IMG/VR virus record: IMGVR_UViG_3300008261_000001
Location: 1 to 64,000 of that record
Length of the DNA stretch: 64,000 nucleotides
Reading direction: 5' to 3' (one strand)
Shown here: piece after piece, positions 445-63,535 of the stretch
Numbering within the stretch: the first letter of the stretch is position 1
Layout of the letters: each line of letters begins with the position of its first letter
Made by a program: the position numbers and the translations under genes
Notes under the pieces: model-generated
Told to the model about the DNA's origin: nothing
The model's database searches: none
What the model saw: only the letters and a program-made list of their open reading frames with translations

Positions 445-741
445 ATGAGAGTACTTGAGATACTGAGCTTGTTAGAAATCTGCACGGGGCATGGGCAGTT
501 CGATGTGCCTTGTAACTGGCAGGCTTATCTTCAGTCTATAGGTGAGGTCGTGTGGGTTTCAGCTAGAGAGGTGGAACTATCCGAAAAGGGGTCTGTAGCT
601 GAGTGCTTAAAGCCTTGCGTACTTCACTCTAGGATAGCCCCTTACGCTTTGTTGGATAAGGGTAGTCGCTTAGAGGTAGTCGGCAGACTGAGTGATAGGT
701 ATATAGAGGTTAAGCCCATAGACCTAAAGCTGAGAGACTGA
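445..741 (+). CDS. Hypothetical protein, 98 aa
   Basis: ORF with GGAG upstream; fills the gap; no motif recognised. Confidence 0.5.
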   Translation: MRVLEILSLLEICTGHGQFDVPCNWQAYLQSIGEVVWVSAREVELSEKGSVAECLKPCVLHSRIAPYALLDKGSRLEVVGRLSDRYIEVKPIDLKLRD

Positions 742-785
742 GAGACTGAGGGTATGATTGGATAAGCACAAATGAAAGGTTCGTT

Positions 786-944
786 ATGGAAAAGAAATCT
801 AGGAGAGAGCGTAAGAGGGATAAGCTAGTGCAGAGGTTCAAAGAACTAAAGGATAAGGAGCGTTTGTTGTTGGAGTACCTAGATTATGTAGAAAAGAGCG
901 AGCTATCCTCTCCACCAATCGTCAAAAGCACCGAACTCGATTAG
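786..944 (+). CDS. Possible small charged protein (52 aa, MEKKSRRERKRD...)
   Basis: Read manually, below the ORF-track cutoff; fills the 741-903 gap and overlaps the 3' end of the convergent gene. Confidence 0.35.
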   Translation: MEKKSRRERKRDKLVQRFKELKDKERLLLEYLDYVEKSELSSPPIVKSTELD

Positions 945-1262
945 TTCGTAGATATCGTCTGGGATGTAAGGTACACAATCGTAGGAGAACCACTCTCCGT
1001 GTAGTCTGAAATCCTTGAGTAGTTCGTGTAGATCTCTCTCCCTCCAAGCCCATCCCTTAAAGTAGGCGATAAGGCGGAGTTCTTCTCCATTACCTGTTTG
1101 AAGTTCTCTTATGCGTTTGTGTGGGTTTTTAGCCCGACCTATTTTTATCAGTCCCGTCTTATTTGATTGGATAAAATAAAGGAAATCTGATCCTTTTATT
1201 TCGGTTTGCTTTTGAAGCGTCCAAGCTCTTAACTCTTTTGAGTTTGTGATGGGTTTATCCAT
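903..1262 (-). CDS. T5orf172 / GIY-YIG-like domain protein
   Basis: YFIQ...LIKIG...RIRELQTGN...ERDLH...GEWF signature. Confidence 0.9.
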   Translation of the reverse strand: MDKPITNSKELRAWTLQKQTEIKGSDFLYFIQSNKTGLIKIGRAKNPHKRIRELQTGNGEELRLIAYFKGWAWRERDLHELLKDFRLHGEWFSYDCVPYIPDDIYELIEFGAFDDWWRG

Positions 1263-1278
1263 GTTCGTTTAATGAACC

Positions 1279-2823
1279 TCAAAGTTCATCCACAAGGTCT
1301 TCTAGTGGGTCTTTGTCGGCTTTTTTAGCCTTGCCCGTGGGTGAAGGTTTGGGTTTGGGTGAAGACTGAAACTGTAAGGGCATATCTAAAATACGCCCAT
1401 ATGGCCATACAATCTGAGCTTCGAACTCGTCAAAGGGTGCTTGGTCACGGCTCTTGAGGCATTGATACTTGATACAAGACTTCTCTTTCATCTCGTCACC
1501 GAACCAGTTAGTTATCACCACATCAGCGGAGCGTTCGGCTTCGTTCGCGTAGGATAAGTGGGTGAGGTTGTACGAGCCACCGTTCTTCTCTGCCGCCTTA
1601 TAACCCTCACGGCTTATCTGAAAGAGACAAAGGATAGGTACGCCCTCGCCCTTGTTGAAGCCCAACGCGGTCTTCTTCAAATCACGGATAACTTCGTTGA
1701 GCCTGTCGGTCGTATTGGAAACCCATTTACGAGGGGACAGCAACAGAGCGTGATCGACAACAATCATCTTAACAGGCTCAGTCTGAGCTAGAATCTCTGC
1801 TTTCGTGCGTAGGTTCTCTACGGTGAAGTCGAGGGTATTGGGGTCAGCCACCTCGATACGGATACTTCCATAACGCCCCTCTTTTACGCCTTCGTCTAGG
1901 TCTCTAGTGACCTCTCTCAAGAACGCTTCTTCGTCTGCGTTTAATAAACCCGTCTTTATCCTTTGTGGGTCAACGCCCACATCTGGATTCTGTGTCATTT
2001 GGATACCGAGAGCCATGCGTTTAGCTCTAAACTTGGGGTGCATGGAGTGGTACACATAGATCATGCGTCTGCATTGGTCGTAGTGCATCTCAAGCGAAAA
2101 GTATATGGTGTTCGTGCCACCGTAGACCGCTTGGTTATAGACCCAGTTCATAGCGGTCGTGGACTTCATATGACCTGTGAACGCGGCTAAGATATAAAGC
2201 TCTTTTTTCCTAAAGCCCCCCAAAGCACTATCTATCATGGATAAGCCTGTAATGGGGAGCTTGTCCACCTTTACATCTTTAGATTTCTGATAGGCTTCCC
2301 AAAAGTCTGCACTGTCCGAGAGTGCTTCACCACCTAAGCTACCACCAAAGGTGGGGGTGTTAATCTTTCCAATCTCAGAGACAAGAAAGTTGCTTGCGTC
2401 TCTCGCTCCCTTGAGGAGCTTTTTGCGTTTGCCACCGTCTTCTTTGACTTCGAGTCCGGACTTGGCGATGGACTTAGCCTCTGCCATAGCTGTGGCGAGT
2501 TGGATTTGCCTAGCCTCCTCTACCTTACGCTCCACCTCAAGCATAAAGTCGCCCCTATAGAGGGGAGAGGATGTGCCAAGCTGACTGATCTTGTCCACCT
2601 CGTCAAAGCCTTGATTAGCGGTGAAGTGGTCTATCACCGTCTCTTGGTTTGGAAGGTGACCATGTACCCTTACGAAAGATTGGATAAACTCATAAGCATT
2701 GTTCTCGGCAGGGTCTGAGAACTCATAGATACTGCTACGGAGCGAGCAGTAGCTTTGAAACATGAGTGATGGGTCGTCTCCGACTCTAGGGTCGGGAAGT
2801 ATGCTTCTAAGTATTCTATTCAC
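1279..2823 (-). CDS. dnaB: DnaB-like (SF4) replicative helicase
   Basis: P-loop AAFTGHMKST, IYFSLEM, IVVDH, QISRE, EAERSADVV, KSRD follow DnaB motifs H1-H4. Confidence 0.9.
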   Translation of the reverse strand: MNRILRSILPDPRVGDDPSLMFQSYCSLRSSIYEFSDPAENNAYEFIQSFVRVHGHLPNQETVIDHFTANQGFDEVDKISQLGTSSPLYRGDFMLEVERKVEEARQIQLATAMAEAKSIAKSGLEVKEDGGKRKKLLKGARDASNFLVSEIGKINTPTFGGSLGGEALSDSADFWEAYQKSKDVKVDKLPITGLSMIDSALGGFRKKELYILAAFTGHMKSTTAMNWVYNQAVYGGTNTIYFSLEMHYDQCRRMIYVYHSMHPKFRAKRMALGIQMTQNPDVGVDPQRIKTGLLNADEEAFLREVTRDLDEGVKEGRYGSIRIEVADPNTLDFTVENLRTKAEILAQTEPVKMIVVDHALLLSPRKWVSNTTDRLNEVIRDLKKTALGFNKGEGVPILCLFQISREGYKAAEKNGGSYNLTHLSYANEAERSADVVITNWFGDEMKEKSCIKYQCLKSRDQAPFDEFEAQIVWPYGRILDMPLQFQSSPKPKPSPTGKAKKADKDPLEDLVDEL

Positions 2824-7853: not shown

Positions 7854-8892
7854 CAACTTACACCGAGCTATACGGACAGGTGGGGTAGGACTAACTCTTT
7901 CCATTCAAGGGGGTAGGTCTTTTAGTTTTCGTTTACCCTCTGTAGACGATTACGAAAAGAGCAAAGACTTTGGTGGATCTGTCCATGAACAGAACTCTTA
8001 TCTGTTGGCTTCCTCGCTCGTTGAGGTGGGTGGTTTTTCAGTACCCCATAACCTCTTATTGGATAAGATAGAGTTTATCCAAAACCTATCTGTGTCTCTA
8101 CATAGGCGGATGGTTTACGCTTTAAGCCATTACATATCTACGAGCATAGATCACGAGCGGTACTTCGAGGGGTTCTGTTACGAGAATATCTCTCGAAACC
8201 TATGGTTCCAATGGAAACAATCACAACAACTTGGATATCCATTACCGCATAGGGACTATCCATTAACACCACTACAGACAAACTGGGTAGCTTATAATGT
8301 TATGGAGGACGAGCGTGAGCGGATAAACCACTCATGGTCTCACTCTTTTTTTGTCGCGAGTAGCATGAACCCAAAGGGTGTCGAAAAGGTACGACAAAAG
8401 TGGGAGGAGTCTGAGAAAAAAGAGAGGGAGTATAGAGAGAAAGTTAGGGAGGCTTGTCGTAAAGGAGACACCTTAACGGATAAGGCGAGGGATAAGATCC
8501 GTAATGAGAAATCTGTAGAGGACTTACAGAAGGAATATCACGCATGGGTGGCTGGAGAAGAAGACGAACACGACAGACTCGTTAACCAATACAAAAACTG
8601 GGTGCAAGGGCAAATCCAACAAAGGGGCAATGCGGAGCGTCTAGCTCAACACAACGCACAAAAAGACGAGTTATTGCAGGCACTGCAAGCTAGTTCTTCT
8701 ATGAGTTCACCGATAAGAACTCTCTCTGATGATGAAGTCGCTCGTATCTCAGCACAAAAGAACCAAAACCGAGGGGTTATGAATGAGTTATCCGATTACG
8801 ACCGAAAGGTAACTCAAATCTTAAACCCCAAGTTTACAGACGAGCCACCACCATCATTGATGGAACAAATCGCTAACCGCAAGGTCACTTAG
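7840..8892 (+). CDS. Tail-region protein, possible second chaperone
   Basis: Overlaps the previous gene and directly precedes the tape measure; helical, charged C-terminal half. Confidence 0.5.
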   Translation: MKVYDNLHRAIRTGGVGLTLSIQGGRSFSFRLPSVDDYEKSKDFGGSVHEQNSYLLASSLVEVGGFSVPHNLLLDKIEFIQNLSVSLHRRMVYALSHYISTSIDHERYFEGFCYENISRNLWFQWKQSQQLGYPLPHRDYPLTPLQTNWVAYNVMEDERERINHSWSHSFFVASSMNPKGVEKVRQKWEESEKKEREYREKVREACRKGDTLTDKARDKIRNEKSVEDLQKEYHAWVAGEEDEHDRLVNQYKNWVQGQIQQRGNAERLAQHNAQKDELLQALQASSSMSSPIRTLSDDEVARISAQKNQNRGVMNELSDYDRKVTQILNPKFTDEPPPSLMEQIANRKVT

Positions 8893-52026: not shown

Positions 52027-52071
52027 CAAAATGGAAAGTTTTTTTGGAGTTAGAGAAATCTAGACACCACC

Positions 52072-52181
52072 ACCTAGATTTCTACCTAGATTTCTACCCC
52101 CCACCCACCTCCCACCTCTGCCCTCTCCCTTAACCTCTGCCCTCTCCCTTAACCTCTGCCCCCTCCCCCCCACCTCTGCCC
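52072..52181. repeat. C-rich intergenic repeats (ACCTAGATTTCT x2; ACCTCTGCCCTCTCCCTTA x2+)
   Basis: Direct repeats read from sequence. Confidence 0.85.
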
Positions 52182-52418
52182 TTAGTAGGGGAGGGACTGC
52201 CACCCCTTACCCACCTTCACCACATTTCCCACGAGGCCACGGAAGTGGGGGTTAGCGGGGAGTCCGAGGGGCAAGCCGTCCTCGTTGGCGAGGGTGGTGA
52301 TGCCTTTGACCTTCTCCACAATCTGCACATCGCCACCCACGGCTCTCTGAAGGTCGGTGAAGCTGTTAACCTCGATGTCGAGGATGTCTCCGTTGGTCTT
52401 GAACACTTGTGCCTTCAT
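52182..52418 (-). CDS. DUF3846-like small phage protein
   Basis: DLQRAVGGDVQIV...NEDGL..GLPAN...LVGNVV. Confidence 0.7.
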   Translation of the reverse strand: MKAQVFKTNGDILDIEVNSFTDLQRAVGGDVQIVEKVKGITTLANEDGLPLGLPANPHFRGLVGNVVKVGKGWQSLPY

Positions 52419-52467
52419 GGGCAATCTCCGTATGTGTTGGTTGGGTGTCTCTCTCGCTGTCCCCCTA

Positions 52468-52496
52468 CTAATAAGGGGGATTGGGACTTGGGATAA
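52468..52496 (-). promoter_or_regulatory. Promoter-like cassette
   Basis: TTATCC-N17-TATTAG. Confidence 0.75.
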
Positions 52497-52555
52497 TCTT
52501 TTGAGAATATTTTTTTGGGGGGGTGTAGAAATCTTGCCCTAGAAATCTAGCCCAA

Positions 52556-52876
52556 CTAGCTAGACCGCGTACCTTGCTTGCGTCTGGGGATGCCCAATAG
52601 CTTCATGTGTTTCCACACCGTACACACACTGCAACCTAGTGAGTCAGCTATATATTGGATAGTTCTACCTTCCTCTACATACAGCTTATTGAGAACCACT
52701 ATCCAATCCACATCATAGGTTCTATCCTTTACGCCTATGCCGAGCTTCTTTTTGGCGTAGCTGATAGAAGAGAACCCATACTTCGCCTCGACCTCTACAT
52801 TGGTCATACCACTATTCAGATCAGCTATGAACTCGTCTAGCTGAGAGGGTTCTAAGAACCTCGGTTTATAGCTCAT
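52556..52876 (-). CDS. Small two-HTH DNA-binding protein
   Basis: MTNVEVEAKYG; LYVEEGRTIQYIADSLGCSVCTVWKHM. Confidence 0.75.
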   Translation of the reverse strand: MSYKPRFLEPSQLDEFIADLNSGMTNVEVEAKYGFSSISYAKKKLGIGVKDRTYDVDWIVVLNKLYVEEGRTIQYIADSLGCSVCTVWKHMKLLGIPRRKQGTRSS

Positions 52877-52907
52877 GTTTAGCACCCATTTCTTAAATAC
52901 GGAAAGT

Positions 52908-52936
52908 TTATCCCAACCCTCAGAACCCCTTATTAG
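52908..52936 (+). promoter_or_regulatory. Promoter-like cassette
   Basis: TTATCC-N17-TATTAG. Confidence 0.75.
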
Positions 52937-52972
52937 TAGGGGGCAGAGCCCCACCTAAGCAAGGAGAACCCT

Positions 52973-53284
52973 ATGAACAGCTTCAACAGCAACAGCTTTG
53001 TTACCATCAGCACCATCCTCACCAATAACAACACGCAGGACGACACCCTCTTGATGGTGAAGGAGTGGGCGGAGCTTATGCTCCTCCTCACGGGAGAGTG
53101 TCCTAACTATACGCCCACCCTCACCCATCTCCCCACCGCCTATGTGGAGGTGGGGAAGTTGCTCGATGAGCAACAAGCCCATCAGCTTGCCTTGTGGAAG
53201 GAGGAGGAGGCTTCTAATAAGGAAGCCTTGTGGCTTGAGGAGGTGGAGAACCGCCTAGAAGCTGGCGAGCGTGTGAGCTTCTAA
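52973..53284 (+). CDS. Small hypothetical protein
   Basis: AAGGAG RBS after cassette. Confidence 0.7.
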   Translation: MNSFNSNSFVTISTILTNNNTQDDTLLMVKEWAELMLLLTGECPNYTPTLTHLPTAYVEVGKLLDEQQAHQLALWKEEEASNKEALWLEEVENRLEAGERVSF

Positions 53285-53319
53285 CCCAACCCCATTCACA
53301 ACACAAGAAAGGTAGACAC

Positions 53320-53634
53320 ATGGCGATATACAGCTTCTTGACCGAAGAAGGAAAGAGGGAGTGGACAGCCCACGCCACCTCATGCTTTTGGTTCGACAAC
53401 ACGGAGGACGGAAAGAGGGCGAATCTAGAGCTTGCCTTCAACGCTCTGATAGAGGCTGGGTTCAACGCCCAAAATGGTCTATTGGTTAAGGGGGGTATGT
53501 CCATCAAGCTGTCCGACTATGGGCTACAAATAAATACGGCTGGTGGTACGGCAGGTAGAAAGCTGAACATTTCCACCATGTGGAAGGACATAAGGGATGC
53601 TTGGGACTTATTGATGCCTCCCCCTAAGGGTTAG
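53320..53634 (+). CDS. Small protein, paralog family A
   Basis: EGKREW, LIEAGF, MWKDIRDAW. Confidence 0.75.
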   Translation: MAIYSFLTEEGKREWTAHATSCFWFDNTEDGKRANLELAFNALIEAGFNAQNGLLVKGGMSIKLSDYGLQINTAGGTAGRKLNISTMWKDIRDAWDLLMPPPKG

Positions 53635-53695
53635 GGGGGTTAAGGGCTAGAGGGTAAGGGGCTAGTGGGTAAGGGGCTAGAGGGTAAGGCTAGAG
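53628..53695. repeat. About 15-bp G-rich tandem repeat GGGTAAGGGGCTAG(A/T) x~4
   Basis: Between convergent stop codons. Confidence 0.9.
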
Positions 53696-54366
53696 ATGAA
53701 GGCGTTCATCTGAGAGACTGCATCTTCGGATAACAGATACTCCCTAGCATAGACGCTATCGCTCTGATCTTGTCGATTGGATAAATCATCTCCGACTTCG
53801 CTTTTAAGGTTGGAGGTCTTTTGCCAAACAAACCGAGAGTCCACCGAGGTCTCAAAGCCTATCCAAGAGAACATCTCTAGTAGGTGAGAAGAGACTTGTT
53901 GAGCATGAGCGTTATGCCCAGAGACGATTACACCGCACTTCTTTCCGTCTAAGGGGTTTTGTTCTCCATAGACGGATTTCCTATTCTCTAGGGTGTTGAG
54001 TCGCTCGATGATTTTTTGCAGTAGTGCCGAGTGGGATCCCCAACGAACGCTTGTGGAGAACAACACCGCGTCCGCCCAAGCGATGCCGTCATAAATAACG
54101 GGCATTTCATCTACTCCCCCATAAGCCTTTGGGTTTTCAGCGGAGAGCTTATGAGCCCAACAGCGATATTGACCTGCATCGAACGAAGCACAGTTGAACT
54201 TTCCGTCCGCATAACAGCTTAGGTTATCCACAATGTGGAGGTCGTTTGCGTTGATGTATCTTATCTCATGCCCTAGAGCTTTAAGCTCTTGTAAGGCGTA
54301 GGACAAGAAAGCACGGCTAGTAGATTTCTTAGCGTGTGTGGTCGTACTGATAGCTAGGATGTTCAT
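53677..54366 (-). CDS. Flavodoxin-fold NAD(P)H-dependent FMN reductase / iron-sulfur flavoprotein-like
   Basis: ILAISTT, Cys cluster CY...C...CW, DEMPVIY...ADAVLFSTSVRWGSHSALLQKIIERL, GKKCGVIVSG. Confidence 0.88.
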   Translation of the reverse strand: MNILAISTTTHAKKSTSRAFLSYALQELKALGHEIRYINANDLHIVDNLSCYADGKFNCASFDAGQYRCWAHKLSAENPKAYGGVDEMPVIYDGIAWADAVLFSTSVRWGSHSALLQKIIERLNTLENRKSVYGEQNPLDGKKCGVIVSGHNAHAQQVSSHLLEMFSWIGFETSVDSRFVWQKTSNLKSEVGDDLSNRQDQSDSVYAREYLLSEDAVSQMNAFISSLTL

Positions 54367-54433
54367 GTGAAGCTCTCTAGGTGGGGGGGTTCTCTATACT
54401 TAGGCTATACTAGCACGAAATGGAAATCCCTAT

Positions 54434-54736
54434 ATGAGATTAACCAAGATAGACAACGGCAAGAGGGTGTGGGACTTGGATAATCCTGAGGTCAACCCTA
54501 GCTCGTGGACGGAAGATAAAAGGAAAGTTCTGTTAGCCACCGCCTTGACCATAGAGCTTGGGTTTCAGTTCCACCCACCCACCAACACCTTCAGCAAGGG
54601 TAGCCTACACCTAGTTGTAGATCTGAAAGACGACACCTTCTCATGTTTGGTAGTCGTTCGTGGTGTATGGTGTCACACAGACGACTTTGAGAGCATATGG
54701 GATGTCATCCGAGAACATTGGGTGCAGTACGCTTAG
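54434..54736 (+). CDS. Small protein, paralog family A
   Basis: NGKRVW, IELGF, IWDVIREHW. Confidence 0.75.
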   Translation: MRLTKIDNGKRVWDLDNPEVNPSSWTEDKRKVLLATALTIELGFQFHPPTNTFSKGSLHLVVDLKDDTFSCLVVVRGVWCHTDDFESIWDVIREHWVQYA

Positions 54737-54739
54737 TTT

Positions 54740-54768
54740 TTATCCCAAGTCCGAAATCAGCTTATTAG
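54740..54768 (+). promoter_or_regulatory. Promoter-like cassette
   Basis: TTATCC-N17-TATTAG. Confidence 0.75.
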
Positions 54769-54815
54769 GGGGGTGTTAGAGAGAGAGACACAACCCCACA
54801 GCTAAGGAGCTAACG

Positions 54816-55082
54816 ATGTTTCAAGCCCTACCCGACACAGCTATGATTTACCTCAATGGCGACGCTCTGGAGGTGGTTATCCTCCACAGCAAGACCTCCC
54901 ACGCAGTCCTCAAGGCGGCGGCTGATCACTCTGGGTGTAAGCTGGAGTACACGGGACTCCATAATGGAGAGGGGGGGAGCTTCGACCCCTACCTTGTGTA
55001 CCACCCCACGGAGGGGCGGAAGGGTGTGGAGAAGTTCATCAAGGAGCTTCCCCCTAGCCATGTGGTGATTGTTTACCGCTAA
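54816..55082 (+). CDS. Small hypothetical protein, paralog of 51010..51261
   Basis: AAGGAG RBS; shared motifs. Confidence 0.75.
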   Translation: MFQALPDTAMIYLNGDALEVVILHSKTSHAVLKAAADHSGCKLEYTGLHNGEGGSFDPYLVYHPTEGRKGVEKFIKELPPSHVVIVYR

Positions 55083-55269
55083 CCCTCCTCATAGGTGGAG
55101 GGGACTAGGTACTCGTTATTATCATTTATCCAATTTAGAGTACCGAGGAAGGATTGGATAAGTCCTACTGATTAATGCTATGAGATTTCTCTACTGAGAG
55201 AGTCCAGAACTGAGAGAGTCCTCTAGTCCAACATAAATAGGGTGTTGTAGGTTGACCCTATAATCCTAT

Positions 55270-56553
55270 CTAGGAGGGGATCTTCACACCTAGACGATAG
55301 TATCTATTCTGAAGTGATAGGGGGCGTATGCCGAACCTCTTGGCTAGGGGGATTAAGTCTTTCTTTCTGGTGTTCTCGTCTACTAGGGACAGAAACTCTT
55401 CCCTAGTCATGTTTTGATACTCTTGTGTACCTCTGTTGGTGAGAGACTTCCACATCTTCTTACGGAGGAGTTTAATGTAGAGGGACATGGGCTTTATCCC
55501 CATACCCTCGGCTACATTTTTAAGAGACTCCATAGAGTCTATGTCCTTGATAACCTCGTTTAGCTTCTCATTGTCGTGTTTAATCTTCTCTTTCTTCCAC
55601 CCCTTATTTCGAGCTATAGTCCTCAAAATCCCTTCGCTCACCAACCACTCCTCTGAAAGCTCTTCGAAGGTCTTACCCCCCAATAATGCCTCGATGATCT
55701 TATCCCCATAAATATCCTCGGCCTGCTCCAACAGCTTAGGCTTAACCTTACGCTTGAGATTGGAGATCTTACCCCCTAAACCTTGCTTAACGAGGGACAG
55801 TCGCACTCCCTCCCGTGTTAAACCCACTTGGTCTCCAATCTCTTGCAAGGTCTGACCCTCTGCCCTCAGCATTGCAATCTGCTTGTCCACTGGACTTATG
55901 TTCACTCGGGACTTCAAGGTCAAATCGTTTGCCTTTAATACCCTCTGCAACCTTTGATAGTTATACCCCATTAAATCCGCTAACTCCCCCCTCCTCATCC
56001 CTTGCTCTATACCACCCTTGATCTTATCCAATTCTTCTCCACTAAGGATATAACCCTTTGCCTTGACGGTTAAACCCTTATTATCCATATAACGCCTCAC
56101 CGACCAAGCCGACCTCCCCACAACCTTAGACAACTCATGATACCCAAGCCCATCAGCTATGCCCTTATCCAATAACTTCCTCTCGGACACGGAAAACTTG
56201 TCCACATCCATAGAGAACTTATCCAACAAGCTCTTTATCCTCGGATAAGAGCAACCCATATGCACCATCAGCTCCGTAGTGTCCTTACCCTCGTCTATAC
56301 CCGCTTGAAGACGAGTCCTCACCGCATTCTCCCCACCCATAGCCGCAATCCACCTCGTTAAAGAAGCATGAGATAACGACTTCATTAAAGAAGGATTCAA
56401 CTTAAGATCCAACTCCCTCAGCCATATGTAAAAAGTCGAGACCGACACCCCCAACTCCGTAGCACACTCCGCAACAGATAAACCACGAGCGATAACCTGA
56501 GCTATCTTTGCCTTGTTCGGCACTATACGCTTCCTGCCCATATGCTCTCTCAC
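55270..56553 (-). CDS. Multi-HTH DNA-binding protein (about 7-8 HTH-like units) with a sigma-70 region-4-like HTH
   Basis: SVAECATELGVSVST, GYHELSKVVGRS, RRGELADLMG, TLQEIGDQVGLTREGVR, TFEELSEEW, SLKNVAEGMG; paralog of 40943..41776. Confidence 0.8.
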   Translation of the reverse strand: MREHMGRKRIVPNKAKIAQVIARGLSVAECATELGVSVSTFYIWLRELDLKLNPSLMKSLSHASLTRWIAAMGGENAVRTRLQAGIDEGKDTTELMVHMGCSYPRIKSLLDKFSMDVDKFSVSERKLLDKGIADGLGYHELSKVVGRSAWSVRRYMDNKGLTVKAKGYILSGEELDKIKGGIEQGMRRGELADLMGYNYQRLQRVLKANDLTLKSRVNISPVDKQIAMLRAEGQTLQEIGDQVGLTREGVRLSLVKQGLGGKISNLKRKVKPKLLEQAEDIYGDKIIEALLGGKTFEELSEEWLVSEGILRTIARNKGWKKEKIKHDNEKLNEVIKDIDSMESLKNVAEGMGIKPMSLYIKLLRKKMWKSLTNRGTQEYQNMTREEFLSLVDENTRKKDLIPLAKRFGIRPLSLQNRYYRLGVKIPS

Positions 56554-56629
56554 TCTCTCCCCCCAACATTAGGGGGGTTCTAGGTGTCCTTTTTTACTTA
56601 TACAAAACCTCTCGGTCTTGTCAAAAAAC

Positions 56630-57433
56630 TTAGTGATCGTTAGCTTCGATTCCGGTCTTGGACTTAAGGAGCTTCTCAAGGTGTGAAACCACCTTGAGGG
56701 CTACCTCCTCGCCATCTGCCGCTGAAACTCCGTTGGGCAGATCTGTGCCGTCTAGTCCAAGACCGATGCCCACGAGCTTGATGCCCTCAGCTTGAGCTTG
56801 TAGGCGTAGGCTCTCTAAATATCTCTTGGTGTTACACTGACCATCGGTCAGGAAGAAGGCTATCTTATGCGTTGCATCTATCTGTCGAGCGAGGTCGAGG
56901 GCGGCCTCGGCATAACAGATCAAGTCCGTCCCACCTGTCGGATGACTATCCTTCATTTTCTTGAAGTGGTCGGGAGACCACTTCTCATGTGGCCACTTCG
57001 CCACGGCTACGATGGGAGAGTTAGCCGAGCTTGCACCTGTGGGTGCGTTGAAGTGGTACTCGTAAAAGCACCCAGCCACTGCCGTTTTAACACCTATCCT
57101 CTGACACCCATCTGCGAGGGCATCTATGAGGAGACAACACTCGTTCCACCACTTGGTGGTTTTACCTGTAGCTGTCTGTTGGGTGTAGTTCATGGAGTCT
57201 GACATATCGACCACGAAGCTAAACCCAGCGGACACCTCGGGAGAGGAAAAGATCCGCTCATAGCGGTCTTTGTTAACATAACCCGCGTTCACCGCCACCA
57301 CGCTCCGCGTGAGAGCGGAGCGGTTCAGACGGACACCGATGGGGCGGAGCCCTACGGCTTGGTTTGCCACCTCTAGCTGACGACGAATCTTGTTCAAACC
57401 ACCTTGTATGGACGACTTAATCTTCTGAGTCAT
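56630..57433 (-). CDS. von Willebrand factor A (MIDAS) domain protein
   Basis: FVVDMSDSM, PTGGT, FFLTDG; GAGGAG before ATG 57433. Confidence 0.9.
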   Translation of the reverse strand: MTQKIKSSIQGGLNKIRRQLEVANQAVGLRPIGVRLNRSALTRSVVAVNAGYVNKDRYERIFSSPEVSAGFSFVVDMSDSMNYTQQTATGKTTKWWNECCLLIDALADGCQRIGVKTAVAGCFYEYHFNAPTGASSANSPIVAVAKWPHEKWSPDHFKKMKDSHPTGGTDLICYAEAALDLARQIDATHKIAFFLTDGQCNTKRYLESLRLQAQAEGIKLVGIGLGLDGTDLPNGVSAADGEEVALKVVSHLEKLLKSKTGIEANDH

Positions 57434-57468
57434 TTTATCTCCTCTGTGTGTTGGCTCTGTCACACCCT

Positions 57469-57497
57469 ATAATGAGGAGATTTTCAACTTGGGATAA
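57469..57497 (-). promoter_or_regulatory. Promoter-like cassette (CATTAT variant)
   Basis: TTATCC-N17-CATTAT between the zincin-like and vWA genes. Confidence 0.65.
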
Positions 57498-57503
57498 CTT
57501 TTC

Positions 57504-58712
57504 TTACCTTTTTGAACCCCCCTTGCTGGGCTTGAACATAGAGCGATATATGGGCTTATGTCCATTCGGCACATAGAGGGCGTGATCGAGGTTCTTTGTG
57601 TTTTTCTCTACATCCTGTTGCATAGCCGACGAGGGGTCTAGAGCCTTACCCTCCCCCTTTAAGATTTTCTCCAAGTCCTCCAACTTGATGCCCTTTTTGC
57701 CCCCTACACGGCTCTTCTCGTCTGAGGGGTCTACCTCAGACGAGTCTCCATCTGCGGAGCCTTCACCACCCTCTGAGGGGTCTCCCTTACCCTTACCCTT
57801 ACCCTCTGAGGGATCTCCCTCTCCAGGCTCCCCCTCCCCCTTGCCCTTCGCCTCAAGGCCCTCACCATCCTCCAACTTCTCCTTTAAGAGATCGTGGAGC
57901 TTATTGATGATTTGGATAGCGACCACGAGGGGAAGATGTGCGGTCTCCTCCCACCGCGTATGGGTGGGCTTGAGGGTCTTCCATACGGGCTTTAAGGTCT
58001 CCACAAGCAGTCGAGCCTCCTCACAATACTCCTCATAGACCTTGAGGGCTTTCTCGTTCCTCCACCCCTTACCACTATCCCTCAGAGCCATCATAAAGTC
58101 TGAGGGGACACCTTGACCACGAACATCCGCCTCAAGTCCAAACACCCAATCTTGAACACTATAGAAGCGTCCCTCGGTGTCGGGATACAATAGAGCCATC
58201 CCTGGCTCAAGCCTCATATCTGCTGTGACATTCGCCCACTTTTTCATGTTCGCTTCCCCATAGGGGACAGACTGATCAAGGTGTGGAACAATCTTACTCT
58301 CGAACTCCTTGAAGGTGGGAAAGGGCATCGATGCCCTATCACAGATGCCATGTCCCGCCTCGTGGACACCACCCCCCACCCCCGCTGAGGCAGTGATGGT
58401 GCTGGCAGAAGAAGCAGAGGGAGAGGGCAGATAAAGCGTGACCCCTACGGGAGCGTTGGTGTACTGATTGTTTGCCTCGTGATAGATGGCGTCCAACCAC
58501 CGCCCCCTATTTGCATTTATCCGAAGACCCTCGACCCACTCAGAGGAGAGGGCGTTGGCGAAGCTCAACCACGGAAACTTAGCAGATATGCCGAAGGTGT
58601 TGCCCGCACGGACGACTTTTACATCTCCCACATCGGTGGGGAAAAATGCGGTCAAGCCCTTAAAGGCTCCCTCGCAGAACTTCAAGGGGTCTTTGGTGTA
58701 GTCAATGCTCAT
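57504..58712 (-). CDS. Zincin-like (HExxH) protein with Gly/Glu linker, resembling the N-terminal half of MoxR-partner vWA proteins
   Basis: VHEAGH; N..ADMRLE; GEGEPGEGDPSEG linker; between AAA+ and vWA genes. Confidence 0.7.
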   Translation of the reverse strand: MSIDYTKDPLKFCEGAFKGLTAFFPTDVGDVKVVRAGNTFGISAKFPWLSFANALSSEWVEGLRINANRGRWLDAIYHEANNQYTNAPVGVTLYLPSPSASSASTITASAGVGGGVHEAGHGICDRASMPFPTFKEFESKIVPHLDQSVPYGEANMKKWANVTADMRLEPGMALLYPDTEGRFYSVQDWVFGLEADVRGQGVPSDFMMALRDSGKGWRNEKALKVYEEYCEEARLLVETLKPVWKTLKPTHTRWEETAHLPLVVAIQIINKLHDLLKEKLEDGEGLEAKGKGEGEPGEGDPSEGKGKGKGDPSEGGEGSADGDSSEVDPSDEKSRVGGKKGIKLEDLEKILKGEGKALDPSSAMQQDVEKNTKNLDHALYVPNGHKPIYRSMFKPSKGGSKR

Positions 58713-58755
58713 GTGAGCCTCCTCGTGTGTGTTGGGCGTTAGTTCCGCCTCACCC

Positions 58756-58783
58756 CTAATAAGCTCCCCCAGAGCTTGGGATA
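58756..58783 (-). promoter_or_regulatory. Promoter-like cassette (16-nt spacer)
   Basis: Divergent pair with 58859. Confidence 0.7.
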
Positions 58784-58858
58784 ATCTTTTTCAAAAAAAG
58801 ACACCCACCCCCCCTCGTCTGTCCGCGTATGTATAAGCCACAAAAAAACCGAAAAAGA

Positions 58859-58887
58859 TTATCCCAACCCAGAAACTCCCTTATTAG
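58859..58887 (+). promoter_or_regulatory. Promoter-like cassette
   Basis: TTATCC-N17-TATTAG. Confidence 0.75.
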
Positions 58888-58931
58888 TGGGTCACAGCGA
58901 CAGAACCAACACACTCCGAAAGGACTCAAAT

Positions 58932-60059
58932 ATGCGGAAGCCCGCCTCCATCACCAAGCTCTTCACCACCACCTTCAACGGCATCACCCGCCCTCGCTCC
59001 CCCCTCACCGAGATCGAGATCTTGAACGCTGGGTTCGACCCAGCCAACCGCCCTGACGGGTATGTCGAGGGTGAGGATTGGATGGTGGATCTTTCCATTG
59101 TGCTCCCCCTCGGACACACCATCGTGCAGGGTCCAGCAGGTAACGGCAAGGACATCTTCGCCCTCGCCTACGCTCACGCTCACAACCTCCCCCTCAAGGC
59201 TTTCGCCTTCAAAGAGGGGGCAAACCCCCTCGATTGGATTAAGAGGGCAGAGCTTGAGGCAACCCCTCAAGGTGGCACTAAGACCTCTTATGTAGAGGGA
59301 GACCTCGTCAAAGCCTGCAAAGGGGTCACCATCAAGAGGGACTTCACCACCATGTCCTCTGACCTCCGCTCGGCTGTCAAAGCAGACATGGAGAAGCAAG
59401 AGTGGACGGTCACGGATAAGAACGGAATATTCACCATCACCGTCCCCGCACTTATCCTGTTCTCAGACTATGATCGTGCTACGCCCGACCAAGTAGAGGT
59501 TCTTCGCCAAGCCCTAGAGCTTGGGAAGGAGAGGCTCGCTGACCCCATCAGCGGAGAGCTGTTCCCCATCGCAAAGGGGACACGCTTTATCTTCACCGCC
59601 AACAGCGGTGCTGATGGTGATGGGGGTCGTGGCATGATCACACGCCCAAAGGACGCCTCTATCCTAAACCGTTGTCAGGGCATCTACGCCCCCCCTCCCT
59701 CAGCCAAGTTCGAGAGGAAGGTCGTTCAAGCCTCGTACCCATCTCTCACAGAGGAGGAGGTCAAGCTCCTTGTGGATTGCAATAGGGCTATCCGCAAGGT
59801 GGCGGAGGAGCAAGCTATGGGCATCGAGGTCTCTCTCCGCACAGCCCTCGCTTGGGCTAAGGCAACCCTCCGCTATAAAGAGGTTATGCCTAACCTCGAC
59901 TTCAAGAAGGCTATGAAGAAGAGCTTCGTTATCGTAAAGGGACACCTCAGCGAGGCTCACAACCACCAAGCTCTAGAGGGAGCTATTGACCCCCTCCTCC
60001 GCTCCGATGTTGTAGATAGCACCACCACAAACCCTAATGTATGCCCTATTGATATGTAA
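58932..60059 (+). CDS. MoxR/CbbQ/NorQ-type AAA+ ATPase
   Basis: QGPAGNGKD, ILFSDYDRA, FIFTANS, SILNRC; AAGGA before ATG 58932. Confidence 0.88.
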   Translation: MRKPASITKLFTTTFNGITRPRSPLTEIEILNAGFDPANRPDGYVEGEDWMVDLSIVLPLGHTIVQGPAGNGKDIFALAYAHAHNLPLKAFAFKEGANPLDWIKRAELEATPQGGTKTSYVEGDLVKACKGVTIKRDFTTMSSDLRSAVKADMEKQEWTVTDKNGIFTITVPALILFSDYDRATPDQVEVLRQALELGKERLADPISGELFPIAKGTRFIFTANSGADGDGGRGMITRPKDASILNRCQGIYAPPPSAKFERKVVQASYPSLTEEEVKLLVDCNRAIRKVAEEQAMGIEVSLRTALAWAKATLRYKEVMPNLDFKKAMKKSFVIVKGHLSEAHNHQALEGAIDPLLRSDVVDSTTTNPNVCPIDM

Positions 60060-60171
60060 GGGGTAGGTGGAGTAGGGGTAGGGGTCAAAGTCGCTTAAAA
60101 TAGCCCTTTAAACGCTTATAGCGTAAATACGATAAGAAGCTGATTCTCTAGTTTAAAACTTTTAATAAAAG

Positions 60172-60200
60172 TTATCCCAAGTTCCAAACCCACTTATTAG
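60172..60200 (+). promoter_or_regulatory. Promoter-like cassette
   Basis: TTATCC-N17-TATTAG. Confidence 0.75.
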
Positions 60201-60252
60201 TGGGGGAGGCAGAGACAGAACGAGACAACACACTCCGCAGGAGCAGTAGTTT

Positions 60253-61694: not shown

Positions 61695-62007
61695 ACAGGA
61701 CTCGCCCTATAAGGGAAGATACATAGGGTCTATCAGTGGGGGTGTATAAGGGGACACATAGGGGTAAGGGATAAGGGGACACACACCCTACGAGAACTAC
61801 ATCCCCCCCCTACCCACCTAGAAATCTAAACCCACCAAGTTCAAAACTATCCAATATCCGAGAAATATCCAATATTGAAGTTCTGTAGACACCAGAAACC
61901 TGTAGAATCGCGTCAATAAGTGGACTTAGGCACCCCCCTAGCCCAATTTGGCATATTAACTACGCACTGAAAATGCAAACCCAAATTTGAAACCATAGTT
62001 AAACCGC

Positions 62008-62110
62008 CCTTACCCTTACCCTCCATATAGATCTACCTTATCCCTTATCCTCCATATAGACCCATATCCCTTATCCGCATATAGACCCTTACCCTTATCC
62101 CATATAGACC
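62008..62110. repeat. Four degenerate 23-28-bp repeats CC(C)TTA(T/C)CC...CATATAGA (origin-like island 2)
   Basis: Read directly; inside a 650-bp non-coding gap at a C-to-G strand switch. Confidence 0.85.
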
Positions 62111-62310: not shown

Positions 62311-62348
62311 GGTGTATTGGGCATAAGGTGTATTGGGCATAAGGTGTA
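62311..62348. repeat. 16-bp repeat GGTGTATTGGGCATAA x2.4
   Basis: Exact copies at 62311 and 62327. Confidence 0.9.
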
Positions 62349-62352
62349 GTAT

Positions 62353-62784
62353 ATGAGAGCAAAGACGACAAAGAACAGTGGGGGGGAGAGGGTGTGGGAG
62401 GGTTGGGTATTGGATAAGTCTATATTGCTGTCGGGGGTGTTTGATTATGATTTAGCGTTGGGTTTGTATGAGGACATAGTGTGTGGTTTGGAGGAGTCTA
62501 ATTTAAAGTTGAGGGGTAGTGGAGGTGGGGACAAGTACAAGATAAGGGAGTTTGTGGTGGGTAGTAGGGTTGTGAGGCAGGAGAGTTTGGAGTTATCGAT
62601 GAGGATTTACTTAGTGCGGTCGAGTTTATTTGGTGGTGCTATATGTTATGACATAATGGTGGTGGGAGAGTTTGAGGATGAGGGTATGTTATCGGTATCG
62701 GGTAAGAGGTTAGATTTGCCGATGGTGGAGGACTCTATATGGGTGGACATAAGGGTATGTTGGAGGAGTTTGGGAGGTGAGTAG
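62353..62784 (+). CDS. Small protein, paralog family A
   Basis: GGERVW, IWVDIRVCW. Confidence 0.7.
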   Translation: MRAKTTKNSGGERVWEGWVLDKSILLSGVFDYDLALGLYEDIVCGLEESNLKLRGSGGGDKYKIREFVVGSRVVRQESLELSMRIYLVRSSLFGGAICYDIMVVGEFEDEGMLSVSGKRLDLPMVEDSIWVDIRVCWRSLGGE

Positions 62785-63139
62785 TTGGGAGGTGACTAAG
62801 ATGAACGAGGTAGGGGAGAGGGTATGGAGGGAGGAGTGGGTGTGGGTTTTTGTAAGTTCTCATTTTACGGTAGAGAAGAGGGAGTATGTATTACACCGAG
62901 GGTTGAGGGAGGCTGGGTTTGAGTTATTTTCGCCTGTGGGGGGATTTATTTACGAGTTGGGTGTGTTAGTGGGTGGGGAGCCGAGGTATATAAGGGTGTG
63001 TGGTCTTGAGTCGGATGGTGGACTTGAGATAGGGATATACAATAAGTGGGATTTATTAGTTCGTGGTGAGTTAAGTGGGGGGGAGTGGGGGCTTTTATGG
63101 GAGCGTATAAGGGGGTTATGGGTGAGTAGTTTTGTATAA
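62777..63139 (+). CDS. Small protein, paralog family A
   Basis: VGERVW, LREAGF, LWERIRGLW. Confidence 0.75.
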   Translation: MSSWEVTKMNEVGERVWREEWVWVFVSSHFTVEKREYVLHRGLREAGFELFSPVGGFIYELGVLVGGEPRYIRVCGLESDGGLEIGIYNKWDLLVRGELSGGEWGLLWERIRGLWVSSFV

Positions 63140-63163
63140 GGGGCTTGGTAAGGAGGTTAGAGC

Positions 63164-63535
63164 ATGAGAAATGTTACGGAGAGAGACTTAGAGACTGGGA
63201 AGCGTAGGTGGAAAAGTGAAGTTTGTTATTTATTGGATGAGGGTGCGTTTATTTTAGTGTTGGATGTGTTGCACGAGGGTTTATTGGAGTCAGGTTTTAA
63301 GAAGTTAAATGTGGGTGGTTTTGAGTATGAGTTAGTGACAGCGGATGGGGAGTATTGGATAAGGTTGAGTTTGAAAGAGAATTCTTTGTTGGAGGTGAGT
63401 TTGTATAACAAGTGGGACATATTGGGTCGGGTGGAGTTGGAGAGAAAAGATTGGATAAGTTTATGGGAGCGTATAAGGGATTTGTGGGAGTGGGTATTGA
63501 GGTTTGCGGCGAATAAGTATCCGAACAATAAATGA
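63164..63535 (+). CDS. Small protein, paralog family A
   Basis: TGKRRW, LLESGF, LWERIRDLW; shares YNKWD.L.R.EL with the previous gene. Confidence 0.75.
   Translation: MRNVTERDLETGKRRWKSEVCYLLDEGAFILVLDVLHEGLLESGFKKLNVGGFEYELVTADGEYWIRLSLKENSLLEVSLYNKWDILGRVELERKDWISLWERIRDLWEWVLRFAANKYPNNK

Follow-up and report, generated by a model that had tools for sequence, protein, structure and literature searches.

In the E. coli phages LLS and P1, the host recombination site Chi (GCTGGTGG) is the most frequent octamer of the phage genome, with 23 copies in LLS (1 per 1.86 kb, about 27 times the expectation) and 50 copies in P1, and one-off relatives of Chi are the next most frequent octamers (PMC12315714). 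These sites lie inside genes and are not explained by codon usage (PMC12315714). Chi is read by the host RecBCD. In Cluster A mycobacteriophages (L5 and relatives), stoperators are asymmetric phage-specific sites, dispersed many times over the genome and related to the operator at the early promoter, and are read by a phage-encoded helix-turn-helix (HTH) protein whose specificity diversifies between lineages (PMC9283540, PMC6550527). Stoperators are 13-14 bp long, number about 20-35 per genome, sit in short intergenic gaps, and are oriented with transcription. The DNA uptake sequences of naturally competent bacteria (Neisseria DUS, Pasteurellaceae USS) are asymmetric words of 9-10 nt, present about once per kb on both strands in coding and non-coding DNA, occasionally as inverted pairs after genes, and they also shape peptide content. 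They spread through uptake bias plus recombination. Cyanobacterial HIP1 (GCGATCGC) and related highly iterated palindromes are lineage-specific octamers, tens of times over-represented and spread through genes, for which a link to a cognate methyltransferase has been proposed.

Here we analysed a 64-kb stretch of DNA (the window), which is the first 64 kb of a circular 290-kb genome of an uncultivated freshwater jumbo phage known from metagenomic data. The octamer TTATCCAA (reverse complement TTGGATAA) occurs in it about once per kilobase, on both strands and through genes. As in the Chi-rich phages, it is the most frequent octamer, its excess is of the same order of magnitude (28-fold over shuffles), and its near-variants are likewise enriched. 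In contrast to LLS, where sites are terminally clustered and 20 of 23 lie in one orientation, the sites here are uniform and orientation-blind, the sequence is unrelated to Chi and A+T-rich rather than G-rich, and the type of word changes between close relatives. In comparison with stoperators, the word has a core of only 5-9 bp and an estimated 270 exact (1,700 core) copies per genome, and is 93% intragenic (62 of 67 sites, of which 35 are sense and 27 antisense). It resembles DUS and USS in asymmetry, density and use of both strands, but their mode of spread does not apply to a virulent-looking jumbo phage. Unlike HIP1, which is absent from the window (0 copies), the word is not palindromic. 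A text search of the literature for the octamer, which was not a systematic motif search, returned only unrelated primer and sequence listings.

Enrichment of the word at the DNA level

To examine whether the octamer is over-represented, as stated in the original prediction, we counted its exact copies and compared them with randomized sequences. The observation was confirmed. All positions listed in the prediction are among the 67 exact copies found (Table 1), whereas dinucleotide shuffles gave 2.38 ± 1.45 copies (largest 6). The next unrelated octamer, AGAAATCT, has 31 copies. The controls that had been proposed beforehand as ways to refute the excess failed to do so. A synonymous-codon shuffle that keeps every protein and the codon usage of each gene gave 14.1 ± 2.7 copies (largest 22), a codon permutation gave 8.2, and an order-3 Markov model gave 9.6. 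A constrained synonymous shuffle that, in addition, may not re-create 94 strongly avoided words gave 12.9 ± 2.0.

All reading frames and both orientations are used. Twenty-two are in sense frame 0 (Leu-Ser-Asn/Lys), 18 in antisense frame 0 (Leu-Asp-Asn/Lys), 22 in other frames, and 5 are intergenic. The dipeptide Leu-Ser is spelled TTATCC in 48 of 215 cases. In line with the original prediction, the excess is a feature of the DNA and not a codon-pair effect.

The one-off variants listed in the original prediction were also enriched, with 22 copies of CTATCCAA versus 7.0 expected, 23 of TTATCCAT versus 11.1, and 19 of TTATCCGA versus 3.7. The octamer is, however, not a sharply bounded unit, since a maximal-order Markov model predicts 60 of the 67 copies from its 7-mers. 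The enriched object is a degenerate word, yTATCC-R-(not G)-T, of which the octamer is the peak. Its pentamer core TATCC/GGATA is present in 395 copies, or 6 per kb, in contrast to 228 ± 11 in the synonymous shuffle, 213 ± 8 in the constrained shuffle, and about 1.3 per kb in distant relatives.

The claims that the TTATCC core also serves as the upstream box of 16 promoter cassettes and is iterated near 62 kb held as well. We found 17 copies of TTATCCCRA, of which 16 have a -10-like box of the TTATTAG/ATTATAG type downstream, and 15 match TTATCC-N15-19-TATTAG exactly. The repeats of TTATCC at 62.0-62.1 kb are also present. Local arrangements of the word and related features are listed in Table 1.

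Table 1. Positions of the word, of related elements and of candidate readers in the 64-kb window
Position	Strand	Feature	Context
652..63458	.	67 exact copies of TTATCCAA/TTGGATAA (31 +, 36 -)	Embedded in 141 copies of TATCCRA and 395 copies of the core pentamer TATCC/GGATA
40170..40231	-	Three perfect 21-bp tandem units (period 21, 3.0 copies, 100% match), each holding TTATCCAAT	Between ORF 39815-40189 and ORF 40241-40654, overlapping the ribosome-binding region of the latter; the only iteron-like array of the word
8059..8082	.	Inverted pair TTGGATAA-N8-TTATCCAA	Inside gene 7840-8892
20880..20904	.	Inverted pair ATTGGATAA-N7-TTATCCAAT (9 bases between the octamers)	Inside gene 20643-21092
55126..55161	.	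Inverted pair TTATCCAAT-N18-ATTGGATAA	Convergent intergenic region downstream of the multi-HTH gene 55270-56553
18260..18279	-	Direct pair of the word, 12 bp apart	3' end of gene 14225-18361
61840..61880	+	Three TATCCRA-type words in 25 bp (TATCCAATATCCGAG-AAA-TATCCAATATTG), resembling the 21-bp iteron unit	425-bp intergenic region
24244..60250	.	Related but distinct: 16 promoter-like cassettes TTATCCCAAG-N13-(T)TATTAG(T)GGGG, i.e. TTATCC-N17-TATTAG; the box differs from the dispersed word by one extra C	Each points at a downstream small gene; TTATCCCAA box starts (low coordinate) at 24244, 38298, 38348, 39234, 40670, 48556, 49543, 49626, 52018, 52488, 52908, 54740, 57489, 58776, 58859 and 60172
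62007..62110	+	Tandem 25-29-bp repeats that iterate CCCTTATCC	The island near 62 kb of the original prediction
40943..41776	+	Candidate reader (inference only): 277-aa protein with helix-turn-helix hits at residues 187-250	0.7 kb downstream of the iteron array
55270..56553	-	Candidate reader (inference only): 427-aa protein with three HTH-like segments (HTH_23 at 13-46; Sigma70_r4-like at 230-251; HTH at 320-370)	

Distribution and conservation of the sites

Whether the word extends beyond the window was determined by sampling three other regions of the contig, which carry it at the same density. In total, 97 octamers and 627 TATCC were found in the 104 kb sampled from four regions. Sites are equally dense in coding and intergenic DNA and Poisson-spaced (CV of spacing, 1.15), and for TATCCRA 72 are on the + and 69 on the - strand. 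Only weak regional biases were observed. The exact octamer is distributed as 0+/7- at 1-6.3 kb, 23+/11- at 6.3-38 kb and 8+/18- at 38-64 kb, which is suggestive but weak, and the far end of the contig shows 5+/5-. This does not amount to the strong polarity, switching at origin and terminus, of architecture words such as KOPS and SRS.

We then compared the sites with other short functional sequences. Short phage promoters such as the T4 late TATAAATA lie just upstream of genes in the sense orientation, whereas only 2.1% of the sites here lie within 100 nt upstream of a start, against 6.2% at random, both orientations occur, and the flanks are flat. Nor do the sites fit DnaA boxes, with consensus TTATCCACA and an essential CACA. 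Of 98 TTATCCA, 67 continue with A, 23 with T and only 6 with C, and TTATCCACA itself has 4 copies.

The sites are conserved at synonymous positions between phages with 64-92% identical proteins. In 12 orthologous genes compared between the window and L008, a member of the same clade, 10 of 23 window octamers are identical, against a background of 10%. Where the amino acids are conserved, 9 of 13 are identical against 18% (P = 7e-5). For the pentamer, the figures are 46 of 69 against 33% (P = 2e-8). We read this as purifying selection on the sites.

Different words in related lineages

Inspection of related phages revealed that TATCC is present at about 7 per kb in the window clade (L008, L010, L272, L273 and L295), but at about 1.3-2.4 per kb in other members of the family. 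Those members instead carry the asymmetric words AGAAATA, AGAAATG, AGAAATC, AGAAAGA or TGAAATA, 3-9 fold enriched, at a density similar to that of the word here and also orientation-blind, or carry no word. The window itself has a second enriched word, AGAAATC (43 copies versus 20.6 expected). Specificity differs by single bases between phages that share 47-71% identical proteins, which we infer would be easier for a phage-encoded reader than for host RecBCD. An apparently unrelated viral contig, L236, also showed an about 2-fold enrichment of TATCC, which would fit a host-determined word.

Putative readers of the word

To find clues to what might read the word, we examined the proteins encoded by this phage and its relatives. 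One prominent feature was an expanded family of about 400-aa proteins resembling gamma-class amino-methyltransferases, with motif I DFSAGWGDR, motif IV TSPPYF, and a variable N-terminal half (~190 residues). The phage has at least 3 of them and relatives have 4-8, forming arrays of paralogues. One orthogroup was seen only in TATCC-type phages and another only in AGAAATA-type phages. This pattern follows phage phylogeny anyway and comes from partial genomes, and is therefore not independent evidence. Moreover, distant phages with 35%-identical methyltransferase-like genes show no enriched word, and the closest orthologue (71%) of the window's 406-aa paralogue sits in an AGAAATA-type phage. The phage also encodes many HTH proteins, including several that are Sigma70_r4- or HTH_23-like. 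The ORF right behind the iteron array is not a DNA-binding candidate.

Interpretation

On the basis of these results, we tentatively propose that the word (yTATCC-R-h-T) is the recognition site of a sequence-specific DNA reader, so far unknown, that is encoded by the phage lineage itself, and that selection has spread and maintained it across the whole 290-kb genome. What the analysis demonstrates is that the word is enriched at the DNA level, genome-wide, conserved at synonymous sites, and restricted to one clade while sister lineages have other words. That the reader is phage-encoded, that it acts everywhere on the DNA by marking or coating it rather than at genes, that its specificity has switched between lineages, and that any protein binds or modifies the word at all are inferences, and every link to a protein is by association. 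Two candidates are considered. The word may be the target of the methyltransferase-like proteins, kept dense as a self-mark or protection, or it may be bound by one of the HTH proteins, given the shared TTATCC hexamer of the cassettes and the iteron array. We lean slightly to the former because of the uniform, orientation-blind density that ignores gene boundaries, but the two cannot be separated on present evidence. We know of no case in which positive selection enriches a methylation target, and the extreme avoidance of palindromes argues that the DNA is not broadly protected by modification.

The interpretation in the original prediction, that a phage or host protein binds the octamer genome-wide, is thus only partly supported. 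The word is a selected, genome-wide feature of the DNA and shares TTATCC with the -35-like box of the cassettes, but the roles proposed (nucleoid organisation, packaging, protection/modification or titration) could not be separated from one another. The framing as an octamer code was too narrow, because the unit is a degenerate pentamer-centred word and the same phage family carries other lineage-specific words, which reframes the finding as a family trait with switching specificity. The prediction also did not consider the best-documented precedent for the commonest octamer of a phage genome, the Chi sites of LLS and P1. A bolder reading, which is unlikely but not excluded, is that a widespread family of aquatic jumbo phages writes lineage-specific self-words into both strands every 150-300 bp (TATCCRA here; AGAAATA, AGAAATG, AGAAATC or AGAAAGA elsewhere), and reads or marks them with its own diversifying array of methyltransferase-like paralogues. 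This would be a phage-encoded epigenetic identity system in which selection enriches the targets of the enzyme rather than avoiding them, alongside near-total avoidance of host restriction sites.

Among the alternatives, a host Chi-like site remains a live, although unlikely, rival. In this view the word would be where a host RecBCD/AddAB-type helicase-nuclease switches from degradation to recombination, and the phage would have accumulated it to protect its DNA ends and to drive recombination-dependent replication, as shown for LLS and P1. In addition to the similarity in excess and the enrichment in L236, no recombinase or RecBCD inhibitor was seen among the proteins scanned with Pfam in the four sampled regions (104 kb of 290 kb, with not every ORF scanned), and a circular or permuted genome would need both orientations. 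However, the lack of orientation bias, the degenerate pentamer at 6 per kb, and the change of word by single bases among closely related phages, with two words in one genome, speak against it. Chi is conserved across whole bacterial orders, and known Chi sequences are G-rich. A partial scan of genome contigs for motif pairs, with at least 120 hits, gave single hits in unrelated taxa, and no cellular genome dense in the word was seen among those covered. A mutational or repair drive, such as the very-short-patch type of activity proposed for HIP1, which would convert near-cognate sequences into a word without a function of its own, is less likely still. Neighbours at core positions are fewer than expected (21 observed versus 39 expected in sum, e.g. 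TTATCTAA 1 versus 5.6), conservation at synonymous sites and uniform density that ignores genes are also what a drive would give, and the phage carries T5orf172/GIY-YIG-like genes while relatives carry pyrimidine-dimer-excision nuclease genes. Yet the expected values for neighbours are inflated by motif-derived codons in the shuffle pool, which makes the depletion weak evidence, neighbours at positions 1, 7 and 8 are enriched as for degenerate recognition, and no pair of cognate methyltransferase and mismatch nuclease was identified. A drive would still need a sequence-specific reader, and hence overlaps with our preferred explanation.

Equally doubtful is the possibility that the sites are merely decoy or spare -35 boxes, bound by a transcription factor or sigma-like protein without a genome-wide role. 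The 17-bp spacing of TTATCC to TATTAG in the cassettes, the presence of the canonical TTGACA among the avoided words, and the Sigma70_r4/HTH_23-like proteins are consistent with it. The dispersed word, however, lacks the extra C of the cassette and any downstream -10-like element, its sites are depleted upstream of genes and lie in both orientations, and decoys would be neither conserved at synonymous sites nor kept at 6 per kb. Finally, we considered whether the word piles up as a compositional by-product, since 34 of 64 palindromic hexamers are absent, as are ACGT and GCGC, 94 words are strongly avoided, and Leu-Ser and Leu-Asp dipeptides are somewhat over-used. This is very unlikely and was not supported, as the constrained shuffle did not reproduce the excess, the sites are conserved at synonymous positions, and relatives with the same avoidance lack the word.

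Properties of the phage genome

The parent contig of the window, Ga0114336_1000001 (IMGVR_UViG_3300008261_000001), is 290,179 bp long and carries the window as its bases 1-64000, with an identical product of the SNF2-helicase gene at 3642-5240. A second assembly joins the two ends of the contig, so that the genome is circular or circularly permuted. It is phage-like, and encodes a DnaB-like helicase, an SNF2 helicase, a tail-like 1378-aa protein, a 2898-aa ORF, a type IB topoisomerase, a superoxide dismutase, and many small genes. No nucleotide or protein match was found among about 50,000 deposited phage genomes (INPHARED), and no tRNA genes were detected. Near-identical copies occur in several freshwater metagenomes and sequencing runs, and the phage is held in the bloom samples JGI 3300008261, 3300008267, and 3300008459.

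One prominent feature was avoidance of restriction-type words to an extraordinary degree. ACGT and GCGC have no copies over the whole window, CCGG has 8, GGCC 13, and AATT 20, and 34 of 64 palindromic hexamers are absent. Asymmetric words such as GCAGC, GGWCC-containing hexamers, and CCWGG are also strongly avoided, and the canonical −35 hexamer TTGACA is among 94 strongly avoided words. Relatives of the phage avoid ACTGG, GGATC, and GGATG.

Enrichment of the word in the window

We investigated whether the over-representation of one octamer across the window, as claimed in the original prediction, is genuine. A count revealed 67 exact copies of TTATCCAA/TTGGATAA (31 on the plus and 36 on the minus strand), including every copy located in the original prediction, whereas dinucleotide shuffles gave 2.38 ± 1.45. 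It is the commonest octamer of the window. The observation therefore held, and the excess also survived the controls that had been set in advance as able to refute it. The expected number of copies was 9.6 in an order-3 Markov model, 8.2 after codon permutation, and 14.1 ± 2.7 (largest 22) in a synonymous-codon shuffle that keeps every protein and the codon usage of each gene. A codon or dipeptide artefact was rejected by three shuffles. Since the genome avoids restriction sites so strongly, we also ran a constrained synonymous MCMC shuffle that may not re-create any of the 94 strongly avoided words, which gave 12.9 ± 2.0. This result, together with the relatives that avoid the same sites but lack the word, rejects a by-product of restriction-site avoidance.

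The word lies in all reading frames, with 22 copies in sense as Leu-Ser-Asn/Lys, 18 in antisense as Leu-Asp-Asn/Lys, 22 in other frames, and 5 in intergenic DNA. It is strong enough to bend protein spelling, since Leu-Ser is written TTATCC in 48 of 215 cases, and Leu-Ser-Asn occurs 18 times against 6.2 expected.

To define the unit, we examined its variants and flanks. The octamer is the peak of a degenerate word, as a maximal-order Markov model predicts 60 of the 67 copies from the two overlapping 7-mers. Single-base variants demonstrated that T2, C5, and C6 are required, whereas A3 tolerates only T, and T4 tolerates A or C. Position 1 prefers T but accepts C, position 7 accepts G (TTATCCGA, 19 observed against 3.7), and position 8 accepts T. 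Anchoring on the pentamer gave yTATCC-R-(A/T/C, almost never G)-T. TATCC/GGATA occurs 395 times, or 6.2 per kb counting both strands, compared with 228 ± 11 in the synonymous shuffle and 213 ± 8 in the constrained shuffle. Beyond these nine or so bases the flanks are flat, and the word is not a piece of a longer repeat or mobile element. A DnaA box was considered and rejected.

Distribution of sites along the genome

The sites are spread evenly, with 2 to 15 TATCCRA per 4 kb, and their spacing is Poisson-like (CV 1.15) without regularity. Density is the same in coding and intergenic DNA (2.2 per kb) and uniform along genes, and orientations are balanced (72 plus, 69 minus). Only 2.1% of the sites lie within 100 nt upstream of gene starts, against 6.2% at random. 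On the basis of position, orientation, and flat flanks, a promoter or terminator role was rejected. We also looked for polarity related to replication or packaging. The exact octamer showed only weak regional strand biases, 0+/7−, 23+/11−, and 8+/18− across three zones, and none at the far end of the genome, while GC skew simply follows transcription.

The word is genome-wide. Three further regions of the contig (207.8-229.0 kb, 270.9-275.1 kb, and 275.1-290.2 kb) carry it at the same density, and together with the window they hold 97 exact octamers and 627 TATCC in 104 kb. Extrapolation to the whole genome gives about 270 and about 1,700, respectively.

Conservation of individual sites

Whether individual sites are held was determined by comparison with related phages. 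The 1238-aa protein has only seven other homologues (E ≤ 0.001) in a collection of 5.8 billion proteins. The contigs of these homologues gave relatives with 64-92% identical proteins (loci labelled L008 and L010, and later L272, L273, and L295), in which the same word is again the top octamer. In codon alignments of 12 orthologous genes, 10 of 23 window octamers are identical in L008 and 5 more read CTATCCAA, against a background octamer identity of 10%. When contexts were restricted to those with conserved amino acids, 9 of 13 octamers are identical against 18% (P = 7e-5), and for the pentamer 46 of 69 against 33% (P = 2e-8). Synonymous positions inside the word are thus held, either by purifying selection or by a continuing drive towards the word.

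Enriched words in more distant relatives

More distant members of the same phage family were reached through the 1238-aa protein, the superoxide dismutase, and a methyltransferase-like protein. They share synteny and the same restriction-site avoidance, but do not have the TATCC excess (1.3-2.4 per kb). Most of them carry a different asymmetric word at similar density, as listed below.

Enriched words in loci of more distant family members (L numbers denote loci of related phages)
Word	Loci	Example counts
AGAAATA	L288, L296, L009, L248, L275, L279	81 vs 9 in L288; 83 vs 10 in L296
AGAAATG	L294
AGAAATC	L292, L293
TGAAATA	L276, L277
AGAAAGA	L247, L289
None or weak	L245, L283-285, L297, L290

Where tested, these words also survived the synonymous shuffle (1.6-1.8-fold for GAAAT, 3-6-fold for the 7-mers), occupy several frames, and are orientation-blind. 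In contrast to the lineages enriched in it, GAAAT is strongly depleted in L285 (7 against 47 expected) and in L245 (23 against 51). The depletion in L285 comes with a general depletion of AGAAA/GAAAG-type words, and TATCC is also depleted in L245 (21 against 39). The window itself has a second enriched asymmetric word, AGAAATC(T), with 43 copies over its whole length against 20.6 in synonymous shuffles, and AGAAATCT with 31 copies. It is related to the AGAAATA-type words that dominate sister lineages. On the pyrimidine strand the words read yTATTTC and yTATCC, and share a 5′ yTAT, which is suggestive of one recognition system that has changed specificity, although this is inferred from the sequences alone.

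Candidate readers of the word

We then investigated who might read the word. A partial scan of the genomes of 185,579 species for two copies of TTATCCAAT within 30 nt returned single hits in unrelated taxa and no genome rich in the word. A scan of viral contigs for motif pairs was likewise partial, so that absence elsewhere is not established by either. Host identification failed by every route tried. The deposited phage genomes and the tRNA search gave no clue, the closest relatives of the superoxide dismutase are other phage contigs, and Microcystis phage Ma-LMM01 has neither the word nor the palindrome avoidance. Literature searches for the assemblies found nothing, and a text search for the octamer found only primer lists. 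The extreme avoidance of palindromes and type IIS-like words suggests a host with very many restriction systems, for which bloom-forming cyanobacteria such as Microcystis are no more than a guess. One apparently unrelated IMG/VR contig (L236, IMGVR_UViG_3300043540_000402; GC 37%), which shows no detectable similarity to this family (tblastx, E ≤ 1e-8), also has a two-fold TATCC excess, with 92 copies against 47.5 ± 4.5 in synonymous shuffles, and TATCCAA 24 against 8.1, in both orientations and several frames. This keeps a host-determined reading alive.

Among phage products, one set of candidates is formed by helix-turn-helix (HTH) proteins. The window encodes several HTH_23/Sigma70_r4-like proteins, and TTATCC is the −35-like box of 16 well-defined promoter-like cassettes of the form TTATCC-N17-TATTAG. 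No such cassette was found in the relatives' loci examined. HTH proteins are encoded at 40943-41776 and 55270-56553, and a 95-aa double-HTH protein near contig 288.4 kb. A second candidate is a family of about 400-aa gamma-class amino-methyltransferase-like proteins, with motif I DFSAGWGDR, motif IV TSPPYF, and a poorly conserved N-terminal region of ~190 residues. The family has 2,880 homologues. The phage has at least three members (contig about 273.2 kb, 276.9 kb, and 217.8 kb), two of which flank a thymidylate-synthase-like gene, a PP-loop ATPase, and a PLP enzyme at 273-278 kb, and relatives have arrays of 4-8, with up to 8 in L290. In a tree of 37 paralogues, one well-supported orthogroup contains only the two TATCC-type phages sampled and another only AGAAATA-type phages, whereas the 406-aa orthogroup is shared by all types. 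This fits a specificity-switching reader, but it is confounded by phage phylogeny and by incomplete genomes, and distant phages with 35%-identical homologues have no enriched word. A link between the 406-aa protein and TATCC was not supported, since its closest orthologue is in an AGAAATA-type phage. By analogy, the type IB topoisomerase may also be considered, as the poxviral relatives of this enzyme are pentamer-specific.

The ORF immediately downstream of the array of 21-bp units (40241-40654) was examined as a possible autoregulated binder and rejected. It matches a repeat found in giant proteins, and its single-sequence AlphaFold2 model was poor (pLDDT 48). The shared repeat is beta-rich, spans roughly 45 residues, and occurs in giant proteins of 2474 and 3177 aa (13-18 copies) and in a 742-aa protein, which may be the window's own 742-aa ORF.

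Comparison with known dispersed words and interpretation

Dispersed selected oligomers such as Chi, uptake sequences, KOPS, and HIP1 are familiar from bacteria, and in phages they are known so far as borrowed host Chi or as repressor stoperators. The closest documented case of the commonest octamer of a phage genome is host Chi in phages LLS and P1, with 23 and 50 copies, about one per 1.9 kb, where near-Chi octamers come next in rank and codon usage does not explain the excess (PMC12315714). Abundance here is of the same order, but the sites are orientation-blind, while LLS has 20 of 23 in one orientation, and the unit is a denser degenerate pentamer word. Moreover, two words coexist in one genome, and the word changes by single bases among close relatives, which we infer to be hard to reconcile with a conserved host enzyme. 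Stoperators of Cluster A mycobacteriophages are phage-specific asymmetric sites read by a diversifying phage repressor (PMC9283540). They are intergenic and oriented with transcription, an arrangement that was looked for here and not found. Uptake sequences and HIP1 share the statistics but not the biology, and HIP1 is a palindrome. We therefore place the word in none of these families.

The analysis shows a degenerate, asymmetric DNA word, selected or held by a continuing drive, that saturates a jumbo phage genome and is one of several lineage-specific words in an uncultivated phage family; its mechanism, including any binding or modification by a phage or host protein, is inferred. The finding is robust and broader than the original prediction of a single octamer, whose interpretation as a genome-wide address read by a protein was only partly supported. 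We tentatively favor a phage-encoded genome-wide reader, either a modification enzyme or a DNA-binding protein, although this reading falls short of being more likely than not. A host Chi-like site is a less likely alternative, and a repair drive or decoys of a promoter factor account for the remaining possibilities, while a compositional artefact is effectively excluded.

Here a different, asymmetric word reaches HIP1-like excess in a 290-kb uncultivated phage, reshapes codon and even dipeptide choice, is held at synonymous sites, and is replaced by other words in relatives. If the reader is phage-encoded, it would reveal a new layer of genome-wide self-marking or DNA organization in jumbo phages, with a rapidly evolving specificity. 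If the reader is the host's, the word would be a first candidate Chi-like signal for the unknown host, and also a practical host-prediction marker for this phage family. Either way, the word is a cheap, testable handle on phages that have no cultured member.

Local arrangements and additional features

A few local arrangements of the word stand out, and are listed below with other features of the window, the contig, and related loci.

Coordinates of features (window positions unless stated; L287 and L298 are segments of the phage contig)
Location	Strand	Feature
3642-5240		SNF2-helicase gene
40170-40231		Perfect 3 x 21-bp array of the word
8059-8082		Short inverted pair of the word
20880-20904		Short inverted pair of the word
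55126-55161		Short inverted pair of the word
18260-18279		Direct pair of the word
24244-60250		Sixteen uniform promoter-like cassettes, A/T-rich - TTATCCCAAG - N13 - (T)TATTAG(T)GGGG, 10-100 nt upstream of small genes in both directions
52072-52098; 52526-52553		Tandem units of the second word, AGAAATC(T)
37548-37967		420-bp intergenic region with 18-bp iterons (TATGTGCTTATATGACCA x 4.7), then an A+T-rich run of TTTAACA repeats, then a G/C-rich inverted repeat
28001-36697	−	2898-aa ORF with no Pfam or PHROG match
40241-40654; 42093-44321		137-aa ORF behind the array and the window's 742-aa ORF
5287-5345; 47996-48066; 50969-51034; 52114-52167; 53644-53689; 62302-62348		Short perfect tandem repeats (periods 15-19, 3-4 copies) in intergenic regions of the small-gene region
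45499-46107; 53677-54366		Fe/Mn superoxide dismutase and NADPH-dependent FMN reductase
L287:2346-7221 (contig about 273.2-278.1 kb); L298:10001-11209 (contig about 217.8 kb)		Possible DNA-modification module: methyltransferase-like 403 aa, thymidylate-synthase-like 236 aa, PP-loop ATPase 306 aa (Asn-synthase/QueC-like), PLP enzyme 286 aa, methyltransferase-like 406 aa; a third paralogue lies elsewhere
L270:19931-21368 (NCBI assembly GCA_031545555.1)		Break of the phage sequence inside the SNF2 gene
L236 (IMGVR_UViG_3300043540_000402, 5348-19933)		Viral contig with TATCC excess

The 420-bp intergenic region looks like a replication origin, and the weak strand bias of the exact octamer changes sign near it. 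The 2898-aa ORF has a very strong local GC skew (down to −0.64) and holds 23 TATCCRA sites. The short tandem repeats are many, and each has a different unit. They may be operator or iteron sets for different regulators. In the NCBI assembly, the sequence continues from the break into KduI and short-chain-dehydrogenase genes with GC 41.7% and normal ACGT/GCGC content, which is probably an assembly chimera but could be a junction with cellular DNA. The superoxide dismutase and the FMN reductase are conserved next to each other in distant family members (L247, L248), and the closest relatives of the dismutase are all on large phage-like contigs.
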